A DNA stretch of 64,000 nucleotides from Macrostomum lignano (taxonomy: Eukaryota). The first letter of the stretch is position 1, and every line of letters begins with the position of its first letter. A model generated the notes under the pieces. The model was not told the origin of the DNA and made no database searches. It was given only the letters and a program-made list of their open reading frames with translations. The position numbers were made by a program, and so were the translations under genes. The stretch covers positions 62,001 to 126,000 of the forward strand of contig NIVC01000717.1 in NCBI GenBank assembly GCA_002269645.1. Reading direction: 5' to 3'. This document shows, in pieces, positions 1-60,323 of the stretch.

Positions 1-171
1 TACAGCCGCGAAGTTGTTGTCGGCGCGAGCCTGCACTCCGTCCGGGTCGCTGTCGGCGTCCACAATCCCACGAGTCAGATATCTTCGACCGAACCGTCGG
101 AACTGCTTGGCTTGAAACTTCAGGAACTGGGTGTACACTTTCGGATAATCAGTCTGACTGTACCACCAGTT
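1..171 (-). CDS. Downstream exon of the ankyrin-TRP channel (continues beyond the left edge of the window)
   Basis: Acceptor CCTTGCAG at 172-179 (minus), then open frame NWWYSQTDYPKVYTQFLKFQAKQFRRFGRRYLTRGIVDADSDPDG... to position 1. Phase 0 matches the GTAAGT donor at 735. An intervening small exon cannot be excluded. Confidence 0.65.
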
Positions 172-735
172 CTGCAAGGCAAGGGCCAACATTTAAGTTA
201 AACAGGCTAAATGCATCTTAATTAATAGTGTGTGCTCAACGTTCATTTAGTATGCAGCAGAGAGAAACAGAGAGCGGATAAACAATAGCTTTCAAATAGT
301 TTAAAAAGCTCTTCTTACCTGTTTAAGAGCAATCCATAGTTTACATATTAGCTACAATAGAATCTTGCGCTGCTACGTATGCAGAGAAAATTTTGTATTA
401 CCACTTCAAAAGTCTCTTGCTTCTCTTGAAGATGACAATATCAGACACGCGTCTACTGGTTTGTGGAAAGTATATATCGGCAATGCAAAAAGCTTGCACG
501 CGGCAGGTAAAGGAAGTATAGCATAGAATTTCTGCTCAGCCTAGCTAATGGGTGTATTTTAGCCTTAAGGCAAAGCCAATTGAAGAAGTCTAGGTGTCAG
601 AGACCCGTCCTGGCAACATCATCTGGGTTCGAGTTCACTTTTGACAGCGGAAAACAAAGTTGAGTTTGGAGGTGTTAGAGAGTGTTAAAGGATGAATATA
701 CATTTTAAATGCTTTAAAAAGCGACTGACACTTAC

Positions 736-3700
736 CGTGCTCTTACTGTAATGCTCGACATTTTGTAGTGCATCGCGAAATGACCAGTAAATGTAGAAAA
801 GTCCGACGAAAATCGCATAAATCACATAGATTGGTGACGGGACGGCGCACATCCGGTTGCACTCAACCAGCATGTCGAAGTACATTCTTCTCCAGACTAT
901 CTTGGACTTGCTGGCAATTTTGCTCACTCTCAGGCTAAACAGTGCAATCAGTAGATTAACCATGACGATGTTAACCAGCAGAAGGAATACAAACATGAAG
1001 CAGTTGTAGAACGCATCACTGCCTTGGTCATAGGCCATGGAGCCGATTTCATACCCAGTAAGGTTGGTACTGTTCACGCTATTAAATTTAATCTCGTCGA
1101 AATTAGTGAACATTAGCTTCAAGGGAAGCGTAAACACCTGGACAAGCGACAGCCAGTAGTTCGCTCCCGCTGGAACAGGGAACAGCAAGTGAAAGAAGAA
1201 AATCCCGAAGGAATATATCACAATCAGAATTACTGACAGAAACGGTAGCAGGTCCAGAAGTAGCAGTTGAACCAGCATCATAACCATGGGCCCCGTCTTC
1301 TCAAAGAATGTCAAAAGTGAAATCAGACGAATTCCCCAAATTAGGAAGCTGGCAGCTGTGAGCATTCTACCGGAGTAGTCTTTATAAAGCAGAACGCCTA
1401 GAAAACCAACAAAAAAAGAGGCCGCACTGGCCAATTCTAGCCAAGAGAGTGCTCTGTTGGTGCTCGAGAAGGGCAGGGAAGACCTGAATATTACACGAAA
1501 AGCCAACTTGAAATGATTTGAAATTCCATAGACAGCGAAGGCATACATCAAAACTTGATCGTAAATATACGTATTACTAGACAATGAATAAGCTTCATTC
1601 CGTATCGGAATTCCAATACTAAATAAAGACAGCAAGATTAAAGCTAACACATCGGACGCGCAGTACGAATAAAACTTTGCACGTGGTGAAGCGGCTGGAT
1701 ATCTCTCTAGCCAAATAATACCGACACCACTCTTAACGTCTTCATCGTTAGGCAGCAGATCCCTAGTCAGACTGCTGTGCCGGTTCTTCCATTCCGTGTC
1801 GGCCAGCTTGGTCATGCACTCACTGACAAACAGCTCATCACAATCAGCTTCCAGCAGCAGTCGCACAGTTGTGCACGGCTCAATAGCATCCTTCTTAGTC
1901 TCGCCAAGCATGCCCGACGTCGGGTGCACACAGGTGAACTGCGGGCCGCTACTTTTTGGCTCCATCCGGCCGCAAATATAGTCGAAGAGCAGTTGCTGCT
2001 CATAGGCGCTGGCATTGCGAAACATTTCATCAAGAGCGTTGAATGCAATGCATTTGAGCTTCTGTCTCAGTTCCTTAATCTCCTCGCGCTGCTCAGGAAT
2101 CTCCTTCAACTTTCGCTTGAGCTCAGTTAGTACTTTCAGGCATGTAGGAATTAGCTCGAACTGTCTCGTGAGCACTAGGTCCGGTATGATCTTGAATTTA
2201 TTGAGAAACAACGCTGTCTCAATGATGGACATCTCTGTTGCCTGAGTAAGATTTTCAGGATGTAAAATCGATGCAGCCAAGTACTCAGTTTCCAGGCTGA
2301 TGAAGCCCATGCTTATTGCACTACGCAGAATCTCAGGCGCGTCAAGTTCAATAGAAGTGACAAGAAGGTTTACACCTGAGAGTGCTCTCTGATGTTGCTT
2401 AGGGACACTCGCTGATACACTGACGGAGCTCAGAACTCTGTTGGCCGTCTCCCTATCAGGCAGATCCAATGCTCGCTTCGGCAAGTCCAGAAGTCTCAGC
2501 AGGTTTGTCTTTCTCCCGCCACTGCTCAGAAATGCTTTCTCAACTGCGCCATCCTTTCCACTGTTGCAGGCAAAGTCGATCGGTGTGAGTCCGTCATGGG
2601 TCGGTGAGGACAGCGACAAGCCCTTTTCAATGAGAAACTTGATGTTGCCCTCATGACCTGCTTGACACGCAAAGTGAAGACAAGAAGCTCCTCTGTGAGT
2701 TCCTGACGAGACTGTCAGTGACAGCAGTTGGGATGCTTCGATGCCAGATAAGCAGGCAAGTGGCTCAACAAAGTCTTTCAAGCGGTACCTGGTGGCAGCG
2801 AGATGAACCGCATGCGTCCCGGTTGAGCTGTGAAGCATCGCCTTGATCAGCTTTCCAACATTGTTGGTGTCCACGGCCGCTTCTAAAATTTGCTTCAACA
2901 AGTTCTCTCGAATTTCGCACACTTGGAGACAAGTCTTACCAATGCTGTTCTCAGTTCCCGGATTTACTCCGGCTTTGGCAATGAGCTTCAGCGATTTGAT
3001 GAAGGCTTCTATGCCGCTAGTTGCCGTAGTGTTCATGAAGAGTGCGTGCATCAGGGTGTTGCCGTCAGCGTCAACGCGAGTCATTTCATCGCTTGTTTTG
3101 AAAGGCTCGAGTGCAGCCACGTTCCAGTTGAAGCTCGCATAGAAAAGCGGGTTTCTCCCTGATGCGTCCAAGGATTTCAAGGACTTATCGAGTTCGCCAG
3201 GGAAATTTTCCTTCAAGAAATTGTAAGACTTGACGTTCGCAAAAGCAAGGTGCACCACTGTTTTGTTGTTTGTTATTTCGCCAGAAGATGCAGTCACTCG
3301 CGAGCTTCTTCACAGCGGCATCAGTGAAAGTGAGCATGCCCCGGGAGATAGCGAGATGCAATACTGTGTTGCCTGCGTCATCTGCGGCTTTGAGAACAGC
3401 AACCCTGGCAGCTGGTAGCAGCTCCAATAGAGTGGCCTCATCTTCACGGTGTGCCAAGCAATGCAGCACTGTCTGACCCAGTTTGTTCTGCTTCAACAGG
3501 CCTTCTGAGCCAGAAATCCTGAGTGCAGTGAGAAGTGCTTCTGAACAGTCTGTCCTATGGGCCATGTAGTGCATGCACGTGTTTCCAGAAGTGTCCTGCA
3601 AGCTGACGCATGCGGTATTCATTGCATTCAGCAGTCGCAACAGCACGCTTGGCTGGCAGTGCACCGACGCCAGATGTAATGCCGTCTCTGACTTGTTGTT

Positions 3701-5058
3701 TAACCAGCAGGGGCATCTGAGATTTCTCAGCAGTGCTGCTTTATGCTTATCTAACATGGCGTTTTTCATAGCCTGCCTCTCAGCGTACTCAAGGACAGCT
3801 AACATTGCGTTATCATTATTTTCGTTCATAGCGGCATAGTGCATCCACGTGTTTCCATCCCAATCAACCAGGCCAAACCTTTGGGCAACTTCCGGGTTTA
3901 AAGGCAACTCTGAAGACAACCTGAGCATTTGTTTTATGGTATCTACTCTGCAGTTTTGAAGCACCAGCTGCAACACCGATTGCTTTTTGTTATTTTTCCA
4001 CCGAAAACTCTTTGGAAAAAACTCAAAAGCCCGAAGTACAGCCTCGTCTGCACCTCGCATGGCAGCATAGTGAATGCTGGAGTTTCCCTGTTGGTCTTTC
4101 GTTTTAAGATGCTTCGTGAGACAGCCACTGCGTGTGTGACCAATCTCTAATAAAGCCGGTATTCTCTCTGCACTGAACTTCTCAATCGACATGTGCAGCA
4201 TTGTTTGTCCAGCGGAGTTCGGAGCAAACAGATCACTGCAACTGGTGGGTGTTGAGTCAACCAGCAGACTCAGCACGTCCTGGTGCTCTATGTTTGAGGC
4301 GGCATAGTGCGCTATGGTGTTTCTGCGTGACGTCTTCAGCATCTTGAGCAGTTTGGAAACCATTTCACCACCATCTATGATGTCAGAGAGGATTTTTCTC
4401 ACGGTGCCAGTAGAATGGCAACCAAGCGAGAGGTGGAGCGGCGTGACCGCCTTGTAGTCGTCTTTGAGCAGAGCTTGAGACCCGAACAGCCCCAGAATGT
4501 GCAGCAATGTGGACTCTCCATCGGTGCTCATCGCTGCATAGTGAGCTGCAGTTCGTCTGCTTTTATCGTGAACATGCTGACCCGAAAAGTCATTGGGTAT
4601 TTGCATGAGCAGTTCATTGGCTTCTGAGAATCTACCAACTTTTGTCAAACGAATAATTCTTCTCATAAAGTCCTTCTCTGCACACTCTTTGAGCACCTCT
4701 GCGGCCTTGTGCGAAGTGTCTGTTGAATCTTGATAGTCGCTTGAAGAATCCTCACGACAATTCATAGTAGTGCCATCTTCTTGGTCCAACTCGGCTTCTG
4801 AGTCGCTACTGTCGCAGTCCAGTTGAAGGACGGCATCGGATTTTACATGCAGACCAGATTGATGAAGTTCAGTGGGTTTCGGCAGCTGTGCTTCATCATC
4901 TTCACCGTCTCGCTGATGGAACTGGGCTGACGACTTTTTTCAGCGAGGCTTTGCTCGGTAGAGCTGCCGCCAATGAAGTTCGCATCGACGTCTACAATTG
5001 TCAACTCCCTGCCGTTGCGGCTGCCGTCACTGCTTCCACTTGATATGTCATCCGCCAT
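736..5058 (-). CDS. Ankyrin-repeat TRP cation channel, one very large exon (about 1440 codons after repairing two 1-nt indels)
   Basis: ORFs 4843-5058, 3185-4789 and 685-3297 join into one reading frame if one A is added to the A6 run (4935-4940) and one removed from the A4 run (3261-3264). About 18-20 ankyrin motifs (GNTxxHxAA-like), pre-S1 SPRAKF, six hydrophobic segments, S5 GPMVMML..DLLPFL, S6 NIVMVNLLIALF, TRP helix SKIVWRRMY and VPSPIYVI. Donor ACG|GTAAGT at 736/735, so the ORF-track tail VSVSRFLKH.. is intronic. Confidence 0.85.
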
Positions 5059-5267
5059 CCTCTGTTAATGGTGGAACGGCTCTCTGCGACGATCTGTGAA
5101 TTAATGGTTTTATAAAATTTTCATTGGCATTTTACGATACAGACATATATAACCTTGCTTACCATGTTATTCCATAAAGGAAGATACTACAGACAGGATA
5201 AAAAATTTCGGGAAAACTTAAATTAAGCCCACAAATACTTCAAAGTAACCCATGCAGCATTTATGCC

Positions 5268-5364
5268 GATGGTGAACTTACGATGGTGAACTTACGATGG
5301 TGAACTTACGATGGAGAACTTACGATGGTGAACTTACGATGGTGAACTTACGATGGTGAACTTA
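5268..5364. repeat. 14-bp minisatellite (GATGGTGAACTTAC) x7
   Basis: Seven near-perfect tandem copies read directly, about 210 bp upstream of the TRP start codon. Confidence 0.95.
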
Positions 5365-21217: not shown

Positions 21218-21475
21218 CTCTGACATAACAATAACACTCCCTGACAACTGAAATGACACCTCTGACACAACAAGTAGACTCCTGACAACTGAAATGACAC
21301 CTCTGACACAACAACTACACTCCCTGACAACTTAAATGACACCTCTGACACAACAAGTAGACTCCCTGACAACTTTAATGACACCTCTGACACAACAAGT
21401 AGACTCCCTGACAACTTAAATGACACCTCTGACACAAAAAGTACACTCCTGACAACTTAAATGGCATCCCTGACG
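21218..21475. repeat. 41-42-bp minisatellite (CTGACAACTTAAATGACACCTCTGACACAACAAGTAGACTCC) x~6
   Basis: Tandem copies read directly. Confidence 0.9.
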
Positions 21476-22024
21476 CATAAATATACGTCTGACAAACAGC
21501 ATTGAAGCTCTGACACATTCTAAGAAAAAGAATCAGTTGAAATATTAAACACTTGAATCGTTACAATTGGCTTCACAAGTTGTGTTTCACAGTCCCCCAG
21601 AGTATACAAAGCACTCTAGATTCGTCTCTCAAATAGTATAAATTTCGCGGACCATGCGCTGGAAGTCAGAGACCCTGATCAGCAGAACTGCCCGCTTCCA
21701 TATAATAGCCCCATCTGTCCATTAATGGTTCCATAAACCAGTGGGCTACATAGCAAAAACTTTCACCGCACCCCCCAACAAGATAGAGGAGGTAGGCGAA
21801 GCCTTTGCTAGAAATTCTTTCGGCACTTTCGTCTAATTAGGGCTGGCTGCACACCGGGTGAACCCCAATGATTGGTGAGGTGCAACGGCGTCAGTCTGTT
21901 TTGGTTCATTTATATTTTGCTTCTGTTGTTCATTAGTGGCGCATAAAAAATTGATGCCAAATTGGCAAGAGATTCATTTGGGCGACAGTGAGATAGAGAA
22001 ACTGGTGAAATATTGAGATACAGA

Positions 22025-22560
22025 GATGAGTGAGAATGAGATTGTGAGATTGAGAGAGGGGTGAGATTCAGGGAGGTAAGATTGAGAGAGGTGAGATTGA
22101 GAGAGGGGTGAGATTGAGAGAGGGGTGAGATTGAGAGAGAGGTGAGATTGAGAGAGGGGTGAGACTGAAACAGGGGTGAGATTGAGAGAGAGATAAGACT
22201 GCGAGAAGTGAGATTGAGAGAGGGGTGAGATTGAAAGAGAGATAAGACTGAGAGGTGAGATTGAGAGAGGGGTTAGATTGAGAGAGGGGTGAGATTGAAA
22301 AGAGAGATGAGACTGAGAGGTGAGATTGAGAGAGGGGTTAGATTGAAAGAGAGATGAGACTGAGAGGTGAGATTAAGAGAGGGGTGAGATTGAAAGAGAA
22401 ATAAGACTGAGAGGTGAGATTGAGAGAGGGGTGAGATTGAAAGAGAAATAAGACTGAGAGGTGAGATTGAGAGAGGGGTGAGATTGAAAGAGAGATGAGA
22501 CTGAAAGAAGGGTGAGATTGAGAGAGGAGTGAGATTGAGAAAAAGGCGAGATTGGTGAAT
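22025..22560. repeat. Purine-rich (GAGATTGAGAGAGGGGT) satellite with higher-order units
   Basis: About 530 bp of GA-dominated tandem variants. Confidence 0.9.
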
Positions 22561-23509
22561 GTGATTCAGGTGAGAAGGAGATTCAGGAAAATGAGATTGC
22601 AACGAATAGGTCAACAATATGAAAATGTTTCCAATGCAATTTGCAAGTTCGGAGTCAAAGTCCCAATTATTTCAGGCAACAATGATTCACGCAGTGGAAA
22701 ATGCATTTCTCTTACTATTAGTAGAGCAAATTAGATTTGAAAAAAAACAATATTATTATAACAAGTTAGAGAGCCATTTGCTATGCTTTTAAATATTCTA
22801 ATCGATACTATCATTACCTACGCATTAACTATTAATGCTCGAGAAAAGCTTTCAGAGATGCAGATTGAATCTGAGTAGACTCAAGAACTGATTTTATGGA
22901 CACCGGAGACATAAAAAATACATTTATTCCGTTTTTGCAGTTAAATAATTTATATCATGGTATAAAACCCGGTTTTATGACTGGAAATATCCATATCTTC
23001 TGAGTCGACTTTGCTTGCTGTCTTGATCTTAATTAGGTCATTAGTCGAATGCATTAGGGAATTAGATAAAAGTACAAGTATTCTACCCCATACACATATA
23101 TAACGCTGTCTGCAAAGCAATATTTTCAGCTCGGGGCCAGGACAAGACGTTCTCAAATCGAACCAGCTGAGACTAAATCCGGCTCTCTCGGGAAATATAA
23201 CAAATTAAATTTTTCGAGCAGTTCTATTCGTTGAAAAAGTATCGATATCCTTTGCCGCTTCAAAGTGTTGCAGTAAAACAAATTTGTTGGAAATTCAAAT
23301 TGTAAAAATTTTAGTGCAACGTATTTGGCCTGATTAAAATTGGAGTTAATACGACTTTGTTTGGAAAATTTAAACAAATTTGGAAAGACAGAAGCTAATG
23401 TACTAATGTAAATCATTTTTAGGACGCAAAATTGATATTGGATAAGAGTTTTATTGATTGATGATTGATGTCCGTCAGACGACAACTCTTTAAATGTCTC
23501 ACACGACAG

Positions 23510-24085
23510 ATCTATTGATGAGTCACATGACGGTTCCATTAGCTGTATGTGACATATTATGTGTATCACGTATACTACGTGATGGTTCTAGATACGTTAC
23601 ATGCATATTTATAGATATGTCACGTCAGTTTCTTAGATGCATCACATGTCAGTTTTATAGATATGTCACATGTCAGTTTTTAGATATGGCACATGTCAGT
23701 TTCATAGATGCATCACAAGTCAGTTTCATAGATGTCTCACATGTCAGCTTCATGCATGTCACATGTCAGTTTTATAGATGTGTCACATGTCAGTTTCAAA
23801 GATGCATCACGTCAGTTTTAAATATATGTCACATGTCATTTTCATACATACGTAACATGTCAGTTTCATAGATGTGCCACATGTCATTTTCATAGATGTG
23901 CCACATGTCAGTTTCATAGATGTGCCACATGTCAGTTTCATATGTGTCACATGTCAGTTTCATATATGTCCACATGTCAGTTTCATAGATGTGTCACATG
24001 TCAGTTTCATAGATACATGTCAGTGATACACACATGTCAGTTGCATTGCATAGATGTGTCACATATCCCTTTCATAGATATGTCA
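23510..24085. repeat. 21-23-bp minisatellite (CATGTCAGTTTCATAGATGTGTCA-like)
   Basis: More than 20 diverged tandem copies. Confidence 0.9.
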
Positions 24086-25172
24086 TTTGCCAAGCGCGAT
24101 GCAATTTAAGCGTGGGCGGTAAAGTTCTAAAGTTCATTCAGAAACGCTAGCAAATGGTGCCCTCCGATCAACTTTCACGAGTCAGATGCATAACGATTAA
24201 ACTTTTTACTCTGCAGTAAATTGGATAAATTGTCCCCCGAATCGAAACCGGATGCACAGAAATTTGTTCCAACTCTTAATTGACCTTCCACAGAACAGCT
24301 TGATTACTTGATAGTTCGATATTTTAATGATCGATTGAGCTTATGCGAGGCGCATTATAACAGCTTAACAAGTAATGTGGCGCCAAAGGATTATTAAAAA
24401 AACTAGTGACCTCATTTCGTACGGAAAGTACCCCGCGACAACGCCTTCTCGGGGTCTGACTTGGCCCACACTTTCGAGTCGTTAGATATGTACATTGTGA
24501 GCCAAAAGAACGGAATAGAACCATGAGTCGTGGCGCAAAAATAAGACGCGCTAAACACTGAGCTGCTCCAGCAGCCCCTTCTAATATCTGCTGGTACTTT
24601 GACATCTTCATTCCATATTCTATGCTCGCCAAAAGGGCTTCCTTCACGACTGTAAGTCTACCAGAGCTGCAACAAACAATTCGATCCCAGATGTTTGTTG
24701 TCGGATCTCGAAATCTGAGTAACTCGTATTTCAAATTTTTTAGCAGATGTGACACTTCAAATGCGTCAAGGACAGACGGAGAAGCATAACTGAAGCAGCT
24801 CAGCCGGTTTGCATCCGGGAGAAGAAATGGGAAGCCTGCCATACCGGCTCTGCAGAATCAGTTTTCCCAAAAAATGGATTCCCCTCGCAGTGACGCTCTC
24901 AATCAGAATTGCCAATCTACCAGCGCAGGAATGAGTGGGAAGGCAATTCCAGGAAATCCGCAATAATGGTCGCCATTTATGAAAGGAATGGGAAAGTCCA
25001 AGGCTACTCATACAGCTCAACCAATGAGAACGCAGAGACGCCTCTTGGAGAGTTGGAATGCCATTTCTTCCCAAATATATGCAGAAGCAGTGCTCCCGGT
25101 TTCGTTGGCATTCCAGTCTACGCAGTGACAACTTCAAATTCATCAAGTCTAAACAGGCAACAGCCAGAGCAC

Positions 25173-26359
25173 ATGGCCTCAGAAGCAGAGATCGCCGACC
25201 TGCGCTGCTGGGCGGAGTCCCAGGAGACGCTGAAGGGCCTCAGCCTGCCTGACGAGGTGCTCGCCAAGTTCCTGGAGGTGGCCACCGCGGACGACAGCAG
25301 AGTCGAAGCAGCCAGACGCCGCCTCGCGGACTTCTGTCGAGTTCGAGCATCCAAGACCAAGGGCGCCGCTGACTGGTTCGAGTACCCGGATGTGAGCTCC
25401 GAGCCGATCCAGGAGCTCTTGTCTGTCGGCTACGTGGTGCAGCTGGGCTACGATGACAACGGAGCAGCCGTGGTGCTGTTCCGCAGCGGACTGTGGCAGC
25501 CCGACAGGGTCAGCTTTGAGGACATGTCCCGCTACATGAACATGTGCTACGATGTGCTGTGCGCTGATCCGGCAACCAGGACTGCCGGACTCGTCACCAT
25601 GGTGGACTTCCAGGTGAGCAGCTTGAGCTGATGAGGCTGGATGCGGTGCCTCAGAACTGAGACTCGCGTGTGTGAAGGTGGCAGCTGTGCTCAAGTGTGA
25701 CGGCTGTGCTCAAGTGTGACAGCTGTGCTCAAGTGTGACAGCTGTGCTCAAGTGTGACGGCTGTGCTCAAGTGTGACGGCTGTGCTCAAGTCTGAAAGTT
25801 GTGTTCAAATGTGACAGCTGTGCTCAAGTGTGACGGCTGTGCTCAAGTGTGTCATATGTACTCGACTGTGACAGCTTTGCTCGAATGACGTTTTACCTAG
25901 ACATAAGGACACCTTAAAAAATGCTTCAAAGTTGAGCTGCATGCATATGATACAGATCGATCGTTCTTCTCTTACACCGCGCAGGGTTTTGAGATGCGAC
26001 ATTTAAGCTACTGGAGCAGGGACGCGACCAAGAAGCTGTCGGCTATTCAGGACGCCTATCCAGTGAAGCTGAAACATGTCAACTATTTCAACACATCCAC
26101 TGTGTTCAACGCACTGTACGAACTGCTCAAGATGTTCATGAGCAAGTCGGTCAAGGAGCTGGTCCGAGTTCACAAGAGCTCGAAAGAGTCGCTGCAGTCG
26201 GAGATCCCGGCCAGGATTTTACCTGCCGAGTATGGAGGAACCGGCGCCGACATCAAGCAGCTGGCGGAGCAGTGGCGGTCCAAGATCGAGCTGCAGCTGC
26301 CCTCGGAGGCTGCCAAGTACGCTGGAGTTGTGTACAACGACACAGCCGATGCCGAATAA
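25173..26359 (+). CDS. CRAL-TRIO lipid-binding protein, copy B, 2 exons (25173-25613, 25985-26359), 271 aa
   Basis: Inverted paralogue of copy A; donor CAG|GTGAGC, acceptor CGCAG|GGT; exon 1 protein identical to copy A. Confidence 0.9.
25681..25890. repeat. 19-bp intronic minisatellite (GCTGTGCTCAAGTGTGACR) x~9-10
   Basis: Tandem array in the intron of copy B only. Confidence 0.9.
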
Positions 26360-27879
26360 GAAGATGCAACCAACAGTGAAGACAATCAAGAGCAGAGCAA
26401 ATTCATCATTATAATATTTCCTATATGCTTCTATTTAAGCTTGAAAACTGACACCCTTAGCAAAGTATTAAAATCAAACTTTAATAAAATTGCAGGATAT
26501 TCTAACTGTCACTAAGAAGTTTTAACAATATAGAATGTTATAACTAGCTTAATAGTGCTAATTGCTAAGCTTAATAACTAAAACTAATTTTACTGAAATA
26601 AATAAGAAACCCTAACGAGTATTCACTCAAACATTTTATCAACCAAAGAGCTTCCAGGCAAAAAATAAGTACCATGTATGTATTTACTGCTATCAAATTT
26701 CCTTCGCTAACTTGGTCACACCAAAATTTAACAATACGATTAAAAATTAATAAACACAAGCTAAAAGAAGCGCAAAAATAATGATTTATTAATTGCGCCA
26801 ACAGCTCTGCAACATAGTGCGAATTTAAACAAACAGATGGATGGAGGCAATAATGCAATTATAGTAACAACAAAAAAACCAATAAAAGTCTTAACTTTAA
26901 CAAAACTTTTTAGTTTCCTTCTGTCGCAATAATTAGATGCTACTAACATACTACTTATAGTAGCACGAATACATGGCAAAATGTTTTTTTGCGATTTTAA
27001 TTTTACGCGTAGTTTATTTAACGACGCTTCCAAATATTTCTACTAGAAGTAGCGCACCAAACGCATTATCCTGTTTTTCTATTACAAGCTGCCGAATTCG
27101 GCAAACCAGTCCATATGAATTAATGGCTAGGAACAATTTTATTAAACAAAGCACTTCTATAAGTTCGTGTAAAGCCACAACAGCAAGGCAACTTGGGTAA
27201 CTCGGTAATTCCGAGTCCTTTAGTACAAAATAAATTTATGATTATTAATTAATATTCACTAATCCAAATATCCCTGCCTCTAATAATAATAATAATAATC
27301 CAAATATGCCAGGCACTGTAAGACTGACACATGACAAAAAAACATTCGAACATGAGAAGAAAAAATCTGCTTCACTTGTGCATACTAAATTGTAATAATA
27401 ATATAATAAAAATAAAAATAATAATTAATAATTATTTAATATCCTAAGTAACTGACATTGAAAAGCCAATACAATGTCTAACAGTAATTATATGCAATAT
27501 TTTATTTTAATAATCTATTAACTACTAAATTAGCCACCCTAAAAGTATAGAAGAAATGACCAATGAATTAAGCATAATAAAGGTATTACACAGTGATACA
27601 ATAGGTGAGGAATAGAAAAGAGATATAAAAAGCGATAGACAGAGAGAGATAGAAATAATGTAAAATGTTAATATAGAAATAGAATGAAGAAAATTAGGAA
27701 GATAAGAGACGATCGATGGACAAATAAAGAAAGAAAAAGGATATAGAATAGATGTCCTATAGGGATAACGCATAAAAAACATAGAAACAGACGATTAAGA
27801 CACTACTAATAGTAGCTAGGAGATATCAGAAGAGACGTACACACACAAAATGCCAATTAGTTTTTTTAATCTAAAAGAG

Positions 27880-27937
27880 AGACAGACAGACAGCACTAAA
27901 AGAGAGACAGACAGACAGACAGACAGACAGCACTAAA

Positions 27938-27998
<61 letters not shown>

Positions 27999-28186
27999 GC
28001 ACTAAAAGAGAGACAGACAGAAAGACAGACAGACAGACAGATAGACAGACAGACAGACGGACAGACAGACAGCACTAAAAGAGAGACAGACAGACAGACA
28101 GACAGACAGCACTAAAAGAGAGACAGACAGACAGACAGACAGACAGCACTAAAAGAGAGACAGACAGACAGACAGACAGCACTAAA

Positions 28187-28235
<49 letters not shown>

Positions 28236-28324
28236 GCACTAAAAGAGAGACAGACAGAAAGACAGACAGACAGACGACAGACAGACAGACAGAAAGACAG
28301 ACACACAGACAGATAGACAGACAG

Positions 28325-28358
<34 letters not shown>

Positions 28359-28396
28359 AGCACTAAAAGAGAGACAGACAGACGACAGACAGACAC

Positions 28397-28431
<35 letters not shown>

Positions 28432-28552
28432 GCACTAAAAGAGAGACAGAAAGACAGACAGACAGACAGACGACAGACAGACACACAGACAGACAGACAG
28501 AAAGACAGACACACAGACAGATAGACAGACAGACAGACGGACAGACAGACCG
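27880..28552. repeat. Compound (GACA)n microsatellite with recurrent GCACTAAAAGAGA interruptions
   Basis: Read directly; lies just downstream of the TOM70 stop codon. Confidence 0.95.
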
Positions 28553-28671
28553 ACAGTGTAAAAGTCAGAAAAGACGCCTCACACAGTATAATGAATGTAT
28601 AATTAGACATTATAAAATTCAGAATAATTTTGCTAGCATCGTGTTGAGCAGACAATCAGGGCTGGAAAATG

Positions 28672-31600
28672 TCAGAAGGCCTGGTGCATGCCGGCAGCCA
28701 ATGAAGGCATTCGCAGGCCCATATCTCGGGCCAGTTGCAGTTGCACATCGGCAGCCTCCCGCAGCGCCCACAGGTGAGCCAACTCAGCCTCAGTCTTAGT
28801 CAGAGCGATAGCCCGATCAAACAGGCCGATGGCGGCGTCCAAGTTGCCACGCTGGACTTCGATAGTGGCCAAAGTTTCTAGGGCGAATTCACAGCGAGGT
28901 TCCACTTCTAGGGCGCGTTGGATTAGGGCTACACCGCCTTCGGTGTCGTTGTGAGCCTGCAGTCTCAGCAGGCCCTGGTGTACGTACGCTGTGCCCGAAT
29001 CTGGCTCGAGCTGTGATTATGGGGAAGCATGGAGCAGTCAGATGCTTCAACAATGCTCAGTTCTTGCTGAAACTCATGAGCACGCTCACACAAGGTGTAC
29101 AACAGCCCTGATACAGAGACTCTGCCTTAGGGAGGCCGACCCAGCAACTGGGGATCTATCTGGGAGGCTGGTGACCCAGCAACTGGGGATCTATCTGGGA
29201 GGCTGGTGACCCAGCAACTGGGGATCTATCTGGGAGGCTGGTGACCCAGCAACTGAGGATCTGGGAGGCTGGTGACCCAGCAACTGAGGATCTGGGAGGC
29301 TGGTGACCCAGCAACTGGGGATCTATCTGGGAGGCTGGTGACCCAGCAACTGGGCATCTATCTGGGAGGCTGGTGACCCAGCAACAGAGGATATGGGAGG
29401 CTGGTGAACCAGCAACTGAGGATCTGGGAGTCTGGTGACCCAGCAACTGGGGATTTGGGAGTCTGGTTACCCAGCAACTGAGGAATTTGGGAGTCTGGTG
29501 ACCCAGCTGTCCCAGCAACTGGGGATTTGGGAGTCTGGTGACCCAGCAAACTGGAGATCTATCTGGGAGACTGTTGACCCAGCAACTGTGGATCTGGAAG
29601 GCTGGTGACCCAGCAACTGGGGATTTGGGAGTCTGGTGACCCAGAAACTAGGGATTTGGGAGTCTGGTGACCCAGCAACTGGGGATTTGGGAGTCTGGTG
29701 ACCCAGCAACTGAGAATCTGGGAGGCTGGTGACCCAGCAACTGGGGATCTGGGAGTCTGGTGACCCAGCAACTGGGGATTGGGAGTCTGGTGACCCAGCA
29801 ACTGGTGATCTGGGAGACTGGTGACCCAGCAACTGGTGATCTGGGAGACTGGTGACCCAGCAACTGGGGATCTGGGAGGCTGGTGACCCAGTAACTGAGG
29901 ATCTGGGAGGCTGATGAGCCAGCAACTGGGGATCTGGGAGGCTGGTGACCCAGCAACTGTGGATCTGGGACACAGTGTATAAAACGGCCCTGATACAGCC
30001 ACTCTGCCTCAGGGAGGCCGGCCCTCATGGCTGTGAATTTCACGAAAAACAGGCCAGTCGGTAAGAGTCGGTACAAACCTCAGTAACCCGTTTAAACGCT
30101 TTCTCCGCCTCGTCAAACTGTTGCGTCTCTAGCAGGGCCTGGGCGTAGAGCGAATGCGCTTCACCGCAACGGCGATGCTTCTCGGTTAAACGGCGAAGCT
30201 GGTCGAGTGCGTTGGCGCCCGACCCGGTTCGGTGGGAGGCGTAGGCGCGCTGCACCGCGGGAATTGGATTGGCTGGGGCACCCTGCGGCGAGTTTTTAGG
30301 GAAGAATTTTTAGTATGTATGATTTTTTGGTAAAGTGCAAGGATTCATATATTGGGAAATCGGGATGTAAAATGGGGATTTCGATAATGGGGAATGGGGA
30401 TCTAAACGCGGATTCCGATGGTGGAGAATGGGGTTTCTAGCAAGGTCTAGCGAGAGTTCCAAGCTTATTGTTGCACTTTTTATGATCTGTCGGCTGTCTG
30501 CTTTCTGGCAATGTTTTGTTTAAATGCGGATTTTGATGGTGGAGAATGGGGACATTCTAAAATGCGGATTTCGATGGTGGAGAATAGGGATCTAGAATGG
30601 GGACTTCGATGGTGGGTGGAGAATAGGGATCTAAAATGGGGACTTCGATGGTGGAGAATAGGGATCTAAAATGGGGACTTCGATGGTGGAGAATAGGGAT
30701 CTAAAATGGGGACTTCGATGGTGAAGAATGGGGATCTAAAATGGGGACTTCGATGGTGAAGAATGGGGATCTAAAATGGGGATTTCGATGGTGGAGAATA
30801 GGGATCTAAAATGGGGACTTCGATGGTGAAGAATGGGGATCTAAAATGGGGACTTCGATGGTGAAGAATGGGGATCTAAAATGGGGATTTCGATGGTGGA
30901 GAATAGGGATCTAAAATGGGGACTTCGATGGTGAAGAATGGGGATCTAAAATGGGGACTTCGATGGTGAAGAATGGGGATCTAAAATGGGGACTTCGATG
31001 GTGGAGAATAGGGATTTAAAATGGGGATTTCGATGGTGGAGAGTGGGGATCTAAAATGGGGATTTTGATGGTGGGGAAGGGGGATCTAAAAAGGGGACTT
31101 CGATGGTGGGGAATCGGGATCTCTAAAATGGGGATTTCGATGGTGGGGAATCGGCAGTTGAAGAGGCGAGCCTAATATTCAAAGAAGGAAAAAAAACTTA
31201 AACAGTCAAATACAAACTAACCTCGCAAGCTTTAGTAAGATGCACCAAAGCTTCGTCCAGCCGGTCGGTGAGCAGCAGCATCTGGCCCCGATGATGATGA
31301 GCGTCAGGATGATCCGGGCACAGCTGCAGCGCTCGATCGAAATGGCCCAGCACGCTATCAGTTAGCACATCAGTTTGGCCTGGCATCGCCGCCTGCATAG
31401 CAAGGGACGCCAGCTTAATGAGAGCGTTGGCCCTGACGGACCGGTCAACGTCATTGGAGTTGGCCAGGCTCTTCAACGTGGGCTCGGCTGACAGGGGCTG
31501 GCCGGACAGCAGCTGCAGGGTGGCCAGAAGCAGGCGGCAGAGATCTCTGCGATACGGAGTGAGATAGGATTTCTTCTCGGCTGCCTGTTGTTCCTGTTGC

Positions 31601-34600
31601 TGCTCCTGCGGCTGCGGCTCGTCACCGGATTCACCTGCAGCTTGGCTTGCCTCGGCTGATGCTGTTGACGAGGGCGTCTGCGCGGAGCCTGCGATGGAAA
31701 TAATGGTTAATATGGTGACCCAGCAACTGGGGATCTGAGAGGCTGGTGACCCAGCAACTGGGGATCTGAGAGGCTGGTGACCCAGCAACTTGGGATCTGA
31801 GAGGCTGGTGACCCAGCAACTGGGGATCTGAGAGGCTGATGACCCAGCAACTGGGGATCCGGGAGGCTGGTGACCCAGCAACTAAGGATCTGGGAGGCTG
31901 ATGACCCAGCAACTGGGGATCCGGGAAGCTGATGACCCAGCAACTGGGGATCCGGGAGGCTGATGACCCAGCAACTGGGGATCCGGGAGGCTGATGACCC
32001 AGCAACTGGGGATCCGGGAGGCTGATGACCCAGCAACTGGGGATCCGGGAGGCTGATGACCCAGCTACTGGGGATCCGGGAGGCTGATGACCCAGCTACT
32101 GGGGATCCGGGAGGCTGGTGACCCAGCAACTGGGGATCCGGGAGGCTGATGACCCAGCTACTGGGGATCTGGGAAGCTGATGACCCAGCAACTGGGGATC
32201 CGGGAGGCTGATGACCCAGCAACTGGGGATCCGGGAGGCTGATGACCCAGCTACTGGGGATCTGGGAAGCTGATGACCCAGCAACTGGGGATTCGGGAGG
32301 CTGATGACCCAGCAACTGGGGATCCGGGAGGCTGGTGACCCAGCAACTGGGGATCCGGGAGGCTGATGACCCAGCTACTGGGGATCTGGGAAGCTGATGA
32401 CCCAGCAACTGGGGATCCGGGAGGCTGATGACCCAGCTACTGGGGATCTGGGAAGCTGATGACCCAGCAACTGGGGATTCGGGAGGCTGATGACCCAGCA
32501 ACTGGGGATCCGGGAGGCTGATGACCCAGCAACTGGGGATCTGTGAGGCTGGCCCAGCAACTGAAGATCTGGAAGAGAATCTGTGCGAACATGTAAAAAT
32601 CAGATTGCTAAGAATTAGCGGCACTAATTACAGCCTCAGCAACCGTACCGTTAGAGTGCACCGGAGCTTTCAACGCCTCCTCGCACAGGCCAATCAGCTG
32701 ATCGAATTTGTCATCGCTCAGAGCCTGCAGAGCGGCACTGAACGGGTCGGAGCCGATGGGCTCTCGCTGCACAGGGTCCTCGGAGAACGACATGAAAAAA
32801 GAGCGCAGAAACGCCTTGCTAGGCAACGAGGGAACAATGCGACTGGCGGATTCTTTAGCTAATTGACGACCGCGACTTTTTAGAACCTGAAATATAGATG
32901 GAAGGTGAGACCCCACATGGGTGAGGTTAGGAAAGGTCGAAAGTTCATATTTCAGTATTAAGGTCACAGGGTCAAAGGTCATAAACACACACTAAGGCCA
33001 AGGTTACAGGGTCAAAGGTCATAAACCCACACTAAGGCCAAGGTCACAGGGTCAAAGGTTATAAACAGACACACTAAGGCCAAGGTCACAGGGTCAAAGG
33101 TTATAAACATACGCTAAGACCAAGGTCATAGGGTCAAAGGTTATAAACACACACTAAGACCAAGGTCACAGGGTCAAAGGTTATAAACAGACACACTAAG
33201 GCCAAGGTCACAGGGTCAAAGGTTATAAACACACACTAAGGCCAAGGTCACAGGGTCAAAGGTTATAAACACACCCTAAGGCCAAGATCACAGGGTCAAA
33301 GGTTACCTGCTCAGCCCTGGTCAAGCTGTCCGAGTTGCTAAAGCTCTCCAGAATGCACACAGCGGTAATATCAACCAAAGCTCCGCGAAGTTCGCCTAAG
33401 CGTTCACGAACTTTAGCCCTACGAGCCAGAGCTTTAGTGTAGCGAGGACTGTGCTCCAGGGCGCTAGTGCAATCCCGCTCGACATCGTCCCATTTGCCCA
33501 GCGACTCCAGGGCCGCGGCGCGATTCTGATAGAATGTTGACAGGGTGTCGGATTGGTCTGGCGGGCACAGATCGATAGCTTCAGAGTAGCATTCGATTGC
33601 TTTGTCGTAGCGACCGCCTCGATAGTATTTATTGCCGCGCTCTTTCACCTGCAGTGCGGCTTCTAGCGGAGTTGCTGGCTGCTGCTGCTGTTGCTGCGGC
33701 TGTTGCTGCGATGGCGGCGGAGACGCTTCTTGAGAAGATTGTCCTGTCGATTCTTCGACGCTCTGGTTCAGGACAAGAAAGGTCAAGAGAGCTTGACTGC
33801 TAAGGGTCAAGTTAGGTCACATACTGAATTTTTAAGGGTCAAGTAAGGTCACATACTGAATTTTTAAAGGTCAAGTAAGGTCACATACTGAATTTTTAAA
33901 GGTCAAGTAAGGTCACATACTGAATTTTTAAGGGTCAAGTAAGGTCACATACTGAATTTTTAAGGGTCAAGTAAGGTCACATACTGAATTTTTAAGGGTC
34001 AAGTAAGGTCACATACTGAATTTTTAAGGGTCAAGTAAGGTCACATACTGAAGTTTTAAGGGTCAAGTCAGGTCACATACTGAATTTTTAAGGGTCAAGT
34101 AAGGTCACATACTGAATTTTTAAGGGTCAAGTAAGGTCACATACTGAATTTTTAAGGGTCAAGTAAGGTCACATACTGAATTTTTAAAGGTCAAGTAAGG
34201 TCACATACTGAATTTTTAAAGGTCAAGTAAGGTCACATACTGAATTTTTAAGGGTCAAGTAAGGTCACATACTGAAGTTTTAAGGGTCAAGTAAGGTCAC
34301 ATACTGAATTTTTAAGGGTCAAGTAAGGTCACATACTGAATTTTTAAGGGTCAAGTAAGGTCACATACTGAATTTTTAAGGGTCAAGTCAGGTCACATAC
34401 TGAATTTTTAAGGGTCAAGTAAGGTCACATACTGAATTTTTAAGGGTCAAGTAAGGTCACATACTGAATTTTTAAGGGTCAAGTAAGGTCACATACTGAA
34501 TTTTTAAGGGTCAAGTAAGGTCACATACTGAATTTTTAAGGGTCAAGTCAGGTCACTAACTTGAACGATATAATGATATCAAGTAAGGTGGGTGATACAG

Positions 34601-48850: not shown

Positions 48851-60323
<11,473 letters not shown>

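Follow-up and report, generated by a model that had tools for sequence, protein, structure and literature searches.

Positions 5058 to 1 of a 64,000-nucleotide stretch of the Macrostomum lignano genome (contig NIVC01000717.1, assembly GCA_002269645.1; "the window" below, meaning the whole stretch that was analyzed) carry on the minus strand a single gene for a putative transient receptor potential (TRP) channel subunit, which is cut by the window edge. The gene was delineated from its open reading frames (ORFs) and a three-frame translation. Its reading frame starts at the ATG at 5058, and a tblastn search with the model of a paralog, P0002, tracked the frame down to 736 and found it again at 171..1, where the window ends. 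The large coding exon (736..5058, minus strand; ORFs, translation, and tblastn of P0002) encodes, in this order, the start methionine and an acidic N-terminus, about 18-19 ankyrin repeats, a helical linker, S1-S6, the TRP helix with a PSP motif, and a post-TRP segment. A GT-AG intron follows (172..735; donor ACG/GTAAGT, acceptor TTGCAG/AAC), at a position that matches the intron of another family member, P0166, and then the next exon (1..171; tblastn and translation), which reads NWWYSQTDYPKVYTQFLKFQAKQFRR...NNFAAV, contains a rib-helix-like conserved motif, and is cut by the window edge. With the intron removed and two single-base adjustments made, the conceptual protein has 1498 aa and zero stops; by comparison with P0002, the last 60 or so residues, a coiled coil among them, fall beyond the window, and the complete subunit would be about 1,560 aa long. 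The initial annotation of this DNA had proposed a long ankyrin array joined to a channel. The join is borne out by one 870-aa ORF (685..3297) that holds the last ankyrin repeats, the linker, S1-S6, and the TRP helix together, so the fusion sits in the DNA itself, and a gene-fusion artefact of the gene model is ruled out. Separately, a 14-bp unit (CGATGGTGAACTTA) is repeated seven times at window 5267-5364, about 200 bp upstream of the start codon.

The large exon spans two reading frames because of two 1-nt homopolymer differences. At the first site, an A6 run (GAAAAAAG, 4935..4940), the paralogs P0002, P0167, and P0168 read SLAEKKSSAQ, for which A7 is needed; at the second, an A4 run (CAACAAAACAG, 3261..3264), the paralogs read RNNKQQTVAHLAF, for which A3 is needed. 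A 40-nt GT..AG intron (3253-3292) was considered as an explanation of the second shift and dropped, as the paralogs continue in frame across the site with a run one A shorter. Outside the two sites, the large exon stays open for about 1,440 codons, far longer than chance would allow. The two shifts are thus either assembly errors or the marks of a young pseudogene. The public models of P0167, P0168, and P0002 skip differing conserved segments or carry out-of-frame tails, which suggests that the older assembly has indel noise at these loci; such frame problems in the sister models weaken a pseudogene call made from the frameshifts alone. By contrast with the three-exon gene of the flatworm channel TRPM_MCLZ (see below), the genes of this family are nearly intronless, given that P0166 (locus L001 10001-12999 of assembly GCA_002269645.1; 2999 bp) has a sole intron of about 95 nt and that the window gene has its intron at the same position in the protein.

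The ankyrin array (aa ~169-841; 2536..4555, minus strand) is made up of divergent repeats, about 18-19 in all and recurring every 36-42 aa or so, as judged from Pfam (Ank_2, Ank_4, and Ank), a repeat hidden Markov model (HMM), and helix pairs in AlphaFold models. The iterated repeat HMM found 15 units (aa 169-841), the AlphaFold model showed 11 helix-pair repeats at aa ~90-598 (predicted local distance difference test, pLDDT, 67), and the model of the adjoining segment added about 7-8 more, which agrees with the count of about 18-20 made earlier from the letters alone. Pfam on the window ORFs returned ankyrin families only here, with no Ion_trans match in the ORFs of this copy. Next comes a family-specific helical linker (1690..2502, minus strand), which contains LRLLDLPKRALDLPDR, IIPDLVLTRQFELIP, GPQF, and the pre-S1 helix LFVSECMTKLADTEW, is conserved across the family, and has a model pLDDT of 65-84; the pre-S1 motif IAFNALDEMF..TTVRLLLEADCDELFVSECMTKLADTEW has its last part at 1789-1833. 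The channel itself was read from alignments and translation, all on the minus strand. It begins with a voltage-sensor-like S1-S4 bundle and the S4-S5 linker (1273..1689; SPRAKFYSY ... FLIWGIRLISLLTFFEKTGPMVMML, with SPRAKF at 1663-1689), and GPMVMML..D..PFL (1177-1347) covers S4-S5 and S5. The pore domain (925..1266) comprises S5 (LLLLDLLPFL...), the pore helix and filter (VQVFTLPLKLMFTNFDE), and S6 (NIVMVNLLIALFSLRV); it was assigned by the PDB alignment to TRPM3, the alignment of the family profile to TRPM2, and a multiple alignment, and it includes the pore-helix motif VFTLPLKLMF (1093-1143) and the S6 motif NIVMVNLLIALF (925-999). The TRP helix (SKIVWRRMYFDMLVEC) and the post-TRP PSP motif (AVPSPIYVI) lie at 820..906 by the PDB and multiple alignments and were noted jointly as WRRMYFDMLVECNRMCAVPSPI. 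Every motif quoted in the initial annotation was found in the minus-strand translation, where it had been placed.

Profile and structure-database comparisons identify the S1-S6/TRP module as melastatin-type (TRPM). In a PDB search with the single sequence, the best 60 matches were all TRPM proteins, with TRPM3 at 1.8e-13. With the family profile, all of the best 60 were again TRPM, with TRPM2 at 1.6e-34; its alignment starts at the pre-S1 K-F-Y, spans S1-S6 and the TRP helix, ends at the PPP motif, and covers the Ca2+-site residues of TRPM (S2 Glu and S3 N..D). An HMM of the family (S1-PPP; family A below) scored 118-132 bits with TRPM_MCLZ-type ankyrin channels of trematodes, 98-129 with a second M. 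lignano group (group B below), and 90-104 with canonical SLOG-bearing TRPMs (n=5, along the whole model; the Echinococcus granulosus TRPM P0169 gave 56 in a partial alignment); NompC and TRPV1 reached 57 and 23 bits, and TRPA1 and TRPC5 had no match. HHalign gave scores of 283 for TRPM (E 1.7e-40), 227 for group B, and 204 for the TRPM_MCLZ type, compared to 63 for NompC, 57 for TRPC5, 39 for TRPV1, and 31 for TRPA1 (TRPA1 probability 18%). For these comparisons, the NompC and TRPA1 channel sequences were taken from PDB alignments, and a chimeric bait query listed only TRPC5 and TRPV1 as outgroups. Outside family A and the flatworm ankyrin proteins, nearly all of the full-length matches among the best 150 of 1.84 billion representatives carried SLOG/MHR domains, and none of them looked TRPN-, TRPA-, TRPC-, or TRPV-like. 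The hydrophobic residue ahead of the TRP-box Trp and the S6 end LIALF are further TRPM-like signatures. The PPP/PSP motif after the TRP helix is common to TRPM, TRPC, and TRPN and is therefore not diagnostic. The proposal that the channel is TRPM-like rather than TRPA- or TRPN-like is thus upheld by the PDB matches, the HMM, and HHalign, and also by the likelihood test described below.

In family A, the ankyrin repeats occupy the position that SLOG/MHR1-2 takes in TRPM channels. The SLOG/MHR1-2 family (Pfam LSDAT_euk) had no match in the window ORFs or in P0004, P0015, and P0165, and a phmmer search with a SLOG query found none in family A. In HHalign comparisons of the linker, family A matched the TRPM_MCLZ type at 83% (123 columns, E 8.6e-6), and the pairs without family A scored 99.5% (group B with TRPM), 97.6% (TRPM_MCLZ type with TRPM), and 99.3% (group B with the TRPM_MCLZ type). 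The segment after the TRP helix matched group B at 97% and TRPM at 94%, with the motifs FLxFQAxQFR, LLYQAxSLR, and ILLQSFALR. Within S5, a D-L-x-P motif with one extra residue was present in 28 of 29 family A, 23 of 23 group B, and 6 of 6 TRPM_MCLZ-type sequences and in none of 5 outgroups; it was present, too, in some SLOG-bearing flatworm TRPMs.

Homologs were collected by an exhaustive HMMER search of 1.84 billion representative sequences, in which the 150 best matches, within and outside the family, were examined; word-indexed searches gave just 1 match with the single sequence and 5 with the family profile. The HMMER matches fell into tiers: P0002 at 7e-199, about 26 more clusters from 1e-57 to 1e-25, a gap, and then matches at 1e-21 and weaker. 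Twenty-two proteins had E<1e-30, followed by a gap ahead of ordinary TRPMs. Family A accordingly comprises about 27 clusters at 50% identity, and its monophyly was recovered in 97% of neighbor-joining (NJ) bootstraps. For the subset of clusters whose source was looked up, all members were from M. lignano, and the clade is so far specific to Macrostomum, which fits the earlier suggestion of an unnamed lineage-specific group. Its public names are "ANK_REP_REGION domain-containing," "Ion transport domain-containing," or "hypothetical." Members have arrays of about 9-22 ankyrin-like units by the repeat HMM. On the N-terminal side, they have in common the motifs GATCLHFACxxGH, LRLIDPxxRALKLPDR, ILPDLxLTRQFxLIP, GPKFPC, and pre-S1 CxxxLxxxxW, and, from the channel onward, NIVMxNLLIALF, IWRxxY, LPPP, WW..YPxxYxxFLKFQAxQFR, and a coiled coil. 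Over most of its length, the window protein shares 95-97% identity with P0002, P0167, and P0168. No protein identical to it was present among the listed proteins, and no second copy of the family was found within the 64-kb window; the window gene is, on these comparisons, a paralog or homeolog that has no existing protein model. Our literature search found no description of family A or group B.

Ankyrin-bearing TRPM-like channels are already known from parasitic flatworms. TRPM and TRPS have been described as TRP families that are free of ankyrin repeats (PMC7306681). The Schistosoma mansoni channel TRPM_MCLZ (Smp_333650) is nevertheless a Ca2+-permeable channel with ankyrin repeats at its N-terminus and no SLOG/MHR1-2 (PMC10788528, PMC11731825); it is the target of meclonazepam, and its function has been published (PMC10788528). 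Its authors have proposed "TRPM-like" as the name of the group (PMC12861061). Of the three exons of the TRPM_MCLZ gene, the third encodes the channel, and this exon is duplicated (3a/3b) in Opisthorchis, Clonorchis, and Paragonimus (Rohr et al. 2026; PMC12861061). The ankyrin-free rule was therefore broken before the present analysis, and the premise of the initial annotation that TRPM-type channels carry no ankyrin repeats is outdated for flatworms (PMC10788528, PMC11731825, PMC12861061). Its overall interpretation stands as far as the TRPM-like pore is concerned and fails in presenting the architecture as unprecedented: the combination of ankyrin repeats with a TRPM-like channel has been published for TRPM_MCLZ, and nothing here is categorically new. 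What is new, on the proteins compared, is a large Macrostomum clade with long ankyrin arrays and no recognizable MHR3/4 linker.

The best match of the window protein outside Macrostomum is an ankyrin protein of Opisthorchis (P0029/P0163) with two tandem channel modules. The P0029 and P0163 models (Opisthorchis viverrini) join two complete channel modules, as would fit the alternative exons 3a/3b, and they probably merge mutually exclusive exons. The pocket residues of Sm.TRPM_MCLZ are H827, H831, Y864, E868, and R943 (PMC12861061). In the trematode proteins, a script found the S1 HxxxH and the S2 YxxxE 33 residues apart, a spacing as in Sm.TRPM_MCLZ; the S4 Arg at Glu+75 was read by eye from the sequence and agrees with the published spacing. 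P0029 and P0164 are taken as TRPM_MCLZ orthologs because of this residue spacing and the exon 3a/3b feature. Group B of M. lignano combines ankyrin repeats with PF25508 (TRPM2-like, MHR3/4) and Ion_trans and is without SLOG. Its proteins (P0036, P0046, P0052, P0056, P0065, and P0077) grouped with the trematode TRPM_MCLZ type in 75% of NJ bootstraps, with HHalign scores of 366-384. They look like co-orthologs, in a free-living flatworm, of the TRPM_MCLZ drug target, which the TRPM_MCLZ papers cited above discuss solely for parasitic flatworms.

The NJ analysis recovered group B and the trematode group in 100% of bootstraps each. For family A itself, the replicates were divided, with 39% placing it with the TRPM-like channels (37% with the TRPM_MCLZ type and group B), 37% basally, and 2% with NompC. 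Identities of family A to any other group were 17-24%, and distance quartets showed long-branch behavior. Since neither NJ nor the quartets were able to place family A on these long branches, we compared the likelihoods of seven fixed backbones (27 taxa, 297 sites, +F+G4), with support expressed as resampling of estimated log-likelihoods (RELL). The best tree joined family A to group B plus the TRPM_MCLZ type (log-likelihood, lnL, -15831.5; RELL 0.58). Next, at a delta lnL of -1.2 each, came two further placements within the TRPM superclade (RELL 0.065 and 0.110, about 0.17 together), and the RELL support summed inside the superclade was 0.75. A position with NompC plus TRPC5 scored -5.4 +/- 4.1 (RELL 0.007). 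Together with the sister position to NompC given below, these results reject a TRPN position and favor an affinity of family A with TRPM.

Two alternatives would place the channel in another ankyrin-bearing TRP family. The initial annotation had named a divergent TRPN as its main alternative, and a NompC-type mechanotransduction channel would account for the long ankyrin array and for the PSP after the TRP helix (compare NompC APSPLN). It is contradicted by the sister position to NompC, at a delta lnL of -18.8 +/- 7.8 (RELL 0.002) and with the 2% of NJ bootstraps, by an HHalign score of 63 against 283 for TRPM and 57 bits against 90-132 in the family HMM, and by a TRP box of I-V-W-R-R rather than E-W-K-F-G, an S6 end of LIALF rather than LIAMM, and about 18-19 repeats rather than 29; we regard it as very improbable. 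A TRPA-type channel, in which the ankyrin repeats would be joined to a TRPA pore, is just as hard to credit. The ankyrin count is near that of TRPA1, and a sister position to TRPA1 (delta lnL -9.0 +/- 8.0; RELL 0.075) is not formally rejected, but the family HMM has no match to human TRPA1, the HHalign probability is the 18% given above, the TRP-box Trp and the PPP-type motif missing from TRPA1 are both present, and no TRPA channel appeared among the top 150 matches or the PDB matches.

The copy in the window is a mosaic in its divergence from P0002. Identity is 96% in the ankyrin array, 92% in the linker, 93% from S4 to the TRP helix, and 88% in the C-terminal exon, and it falls to 55% in S1-S3 (within 1273-1689, minus strand) and 28% in the post-TRP segment (736-819, minus strand). 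No closer donor of S1-S3 was present among the fetched proteins. The window copy reads GISNHF and LSWLE where the family consensus has the Q-E...D and N..D of the TRPM Ca2+ site, and the pore-loop Gly of several family members is Thr. With the Ca2+-site residues lost and S1-S3 diverged, the window copy is probably not Ca2+-gated in the manner of TRPM2/4/5/8 and may be a ligand-pocket variant. A young pseudogene, which would concern the function of this copy and leave its classification unaffected, is possible though doubtful. It would explain two 1-nt frameshifts inside 1.7 kb, the loss of the conserved S2 Glu and S3 Asn/Asp together with the Gly-to-Thr change in the pore, the drop to 55% in S1-S3 against a paralog with 95% identity elsewhere, and a channel domain that Pfam Ion_trans no longer detects. 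Both shifts are, however, single-base changes in A-run length, a typical error of long-read assembly, and the coding sequence outside them is free of stops over its ~1,440 codons; identity to the paralog is 93% across the pore, S6, and TRP helix, and similar frame problems in the public models of sister copies suggest assembly noise. The functional status of the copy depends on whether both homopolymer frameshifts are real.

Collectively, these results point to a TRPM-type, ankyrin-bearing channel subunit that belongs to a diverged, fast-evolving Macrostomum branch nearest to the TRPM_MCLZ-type channels of flatworms, a reading to which we give a probability of roughly 75%. Several points weigh against it. 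Family A is a long branch with 22-24% identity to any TRPM-like group, and its NJ bootstraps are split, 39% against 37%. The likelihood test used a BLOSUM62-derived model, a home-made script, and fixed subtrees, with one sequence each for TRPN and TRPA and no labeled TRPS sequence, and in it the sister position to TRPA1 survived, as did a position of family A outside TRPM plus TRPC/N (delta lnL -3.6 +/- 5.0; RELL 0.16). SLOG and PF25508 (MHR3/4) went undetected in family A, and its linker matched that of TRPM at 16%. The AlphaFold model of the linker plus channel, built on a 6-sequence alignment, has a pLDDT of 49.8 and is poor in the channel part (pLDDT <50); Foldseek matched this model to TRPM3, TRPM8, TRPM5, and ankyrin proteins at TM-scores of about 0.2, so that structural support is weak. 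The two frameshifts and the lost S2/S3 residues also leave room for decay of the copy.

Some of the same observations would suit an old, independent TRP subfamily outside TRPM/TRPS, possibly with an ancestral ankyrin-plus-TRP architecture. The 37% of NJ bootstraps in which family A fell outside TRPM plus TRPC/TRPN, the likelihood position outside these groups that was not rejected, the undetectable PF25508 and SLOG, and the 16% match of the linker to TRPM MHR3/4 all agree with it. Yet the TRPM profile scores are 4-5 times those to TRPC or TRPN, the S5, S6, and C-terminal motifs are common to flatworm TRPM-like channels, and the linker matches TRPM_MCLZ at 83%. A basal placement beside the long branches of TRPA1 and TRPV1 is an expected long-branch artefact, and the restriction to Macrostomum among 1.84 billion representatives (for the sources looked up) argues against great age. 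We therefore consider an independent subfamily unlikely. Slightly less likely still is its bolder form, which would make family A a metazoan TRP lineage of its own, one that has either retained the ankyrin-bearing state of the TRPM/TRPS stem before SLOG was captured or converged on a NompC-like design. If convergence were true, a near-full-turn ankyrin spring would sit on a TRPM-like pore, for mechanosensation; in either version, recent paralogs would be diverging fast in their S1-S3 pocket.

Under the preferred reading of a diverged TRPM-like branch, a flatworm TRPM lineage would have swapped SLOG for ankyrin repeats; group B and TRPM_MCLZ would be the conservative members of this ankyrin-bearing lineage, and family A would have expanded in Macrostomum and diverged strongly, to longer ankyrin arrays and a remodeled linker. 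By analogy with TRPM structures and TRPM_MCLZ, the subunit would form a tetrameric, non-selective cation channel, in which a ligand or lipid pocket, formed by the S1-S4 bundle and the TRP helix, would govern the opening of the S6 gate (NLLIALF), and cations would permeate by way of the pore loop (F-T-N-F-D-E). The C-terminal coiled coil, known from the paralogs, may aid tetramerization, and the ankyrin solenoid could serve as a cytoplasmic tether or a protein-docking arm. A sensory role of the channel would be pure inference. A free-living flatworm thus carries two ankyrin-bearing TRPM-like groups, the likely TRPM_MCLZ co-orthologs and a larger, diverged expansion, and the two would offer a route to study the replacement of SLOG and the origin of an anthelmintic target. 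M. lignano is a transgenic laboratory model, and ankyrin-bearing TRPM-like channels could be studied there. That S1-S3 is hypervariable between paralogs otherwise nearly identical may be a sign that this pocket, at which praziquantel, meclonazepam, and menthol bind in relatives, is diversifying.

The remainder of the 64-kb window is rich in repeats. Minisatellites are dense at 21218-34556 and include 31-bp arrays (29138-29970 and 31716-32563), a 35-bp array (30522-31151), a 32-bp array (33801-34556), and an (AGAC)n stretch (27876-28556); they skew the composition of this stretch and give rise to spurious long ORFs in it. A 410-aa ORF (51906-53138, minus strand) has a DUF3504 match (6e-10) and a weak phage-integrase match, and looks like a tyrosine recombinase, either from a Crypton-like mobile element or domesticated. 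A 240-aa ORF (24909-25631, plus strand) has the beginning of a CRAL/TRIO lipid-binding domain at its end, with a Pfam match right at the threshold, and is probably one exon of another gene.

Compared with other ankyrin-bearing TRP channels, the window protein is like NompC (PDB 5VKQ) in having a long ankyrin solenoid before a six-transmembrane channel and a PSP motif after the TRP helix, whereas NompC has 29 repeats against about 18-19, a TRP box of EWKFG against IVWRRMY, and an S6 end of LIAMM against LIALF. TRPA1 has a comparable ankyrin count, but its channel module has no significant similarity to family A, and it is without the TRP-box Trp and the PPP motif that are both present in the window protein. 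Soromelastatin (TRPS) channels carry SLOG, have a divergent TRP box 2, and are reported to be free of ankyrin repeats (PMC7306681); the window protein is without SLOG. The canonical TRPM2, TRPM3, and TRPM8 have the same module from pre-S1 to PPP, and the consensus of family A keeps their S2 Glu and S3 N..D. They differ in SLOG/MHR1-2, MHR3/4, and Pfam TRPM_tetra, which were undetected in the window protein and in whose place it has the long ankyrin array, and in a TRP box of W-K-F-Q-R against W-R-R-x-Y.

The closest parallel is TRPM_MCLZ, whose group is the nearest relative of family A outside Macrostomum by HMMER and, together with group B, its best-scoring partner in the likelihood test (RELL 0.58). 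Like the window gene, TRPM_MCLZ has N-terminal ankyrin repeats where SLOG/MHR1-2 would be, in one polypeptide with TRPM-type S1-S6, a TRP helix, a PPP-type motif, and the S6 sequence NLLIALFS; with family A, it has in common the S5 D-L-x-P with its extra residue and a post-TRP helix of the form x-L-x-Q-A/S-x-x-L/F-R. However, identity to the window gene in S1-TRP is about 24%, and the trematode proteins have about 6-9 ankyrin repeats against about 18-19. The linkers are weakly alignable, with little similarity to TRPM MHR3/4 left in the window protein, and of the TRPM_MCLZ pocket the window copy has kept the S4 Arg alone and not the S1 HxxxH or the S2 YxxxE. The window gene also has its ankyrin repeats and channel in one exon, unlike the three-exon TRPM_MCLZ. 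On these protein comparisons, the window gene is not the TRPM_MCLZ ortholog, a role that group B fits better.

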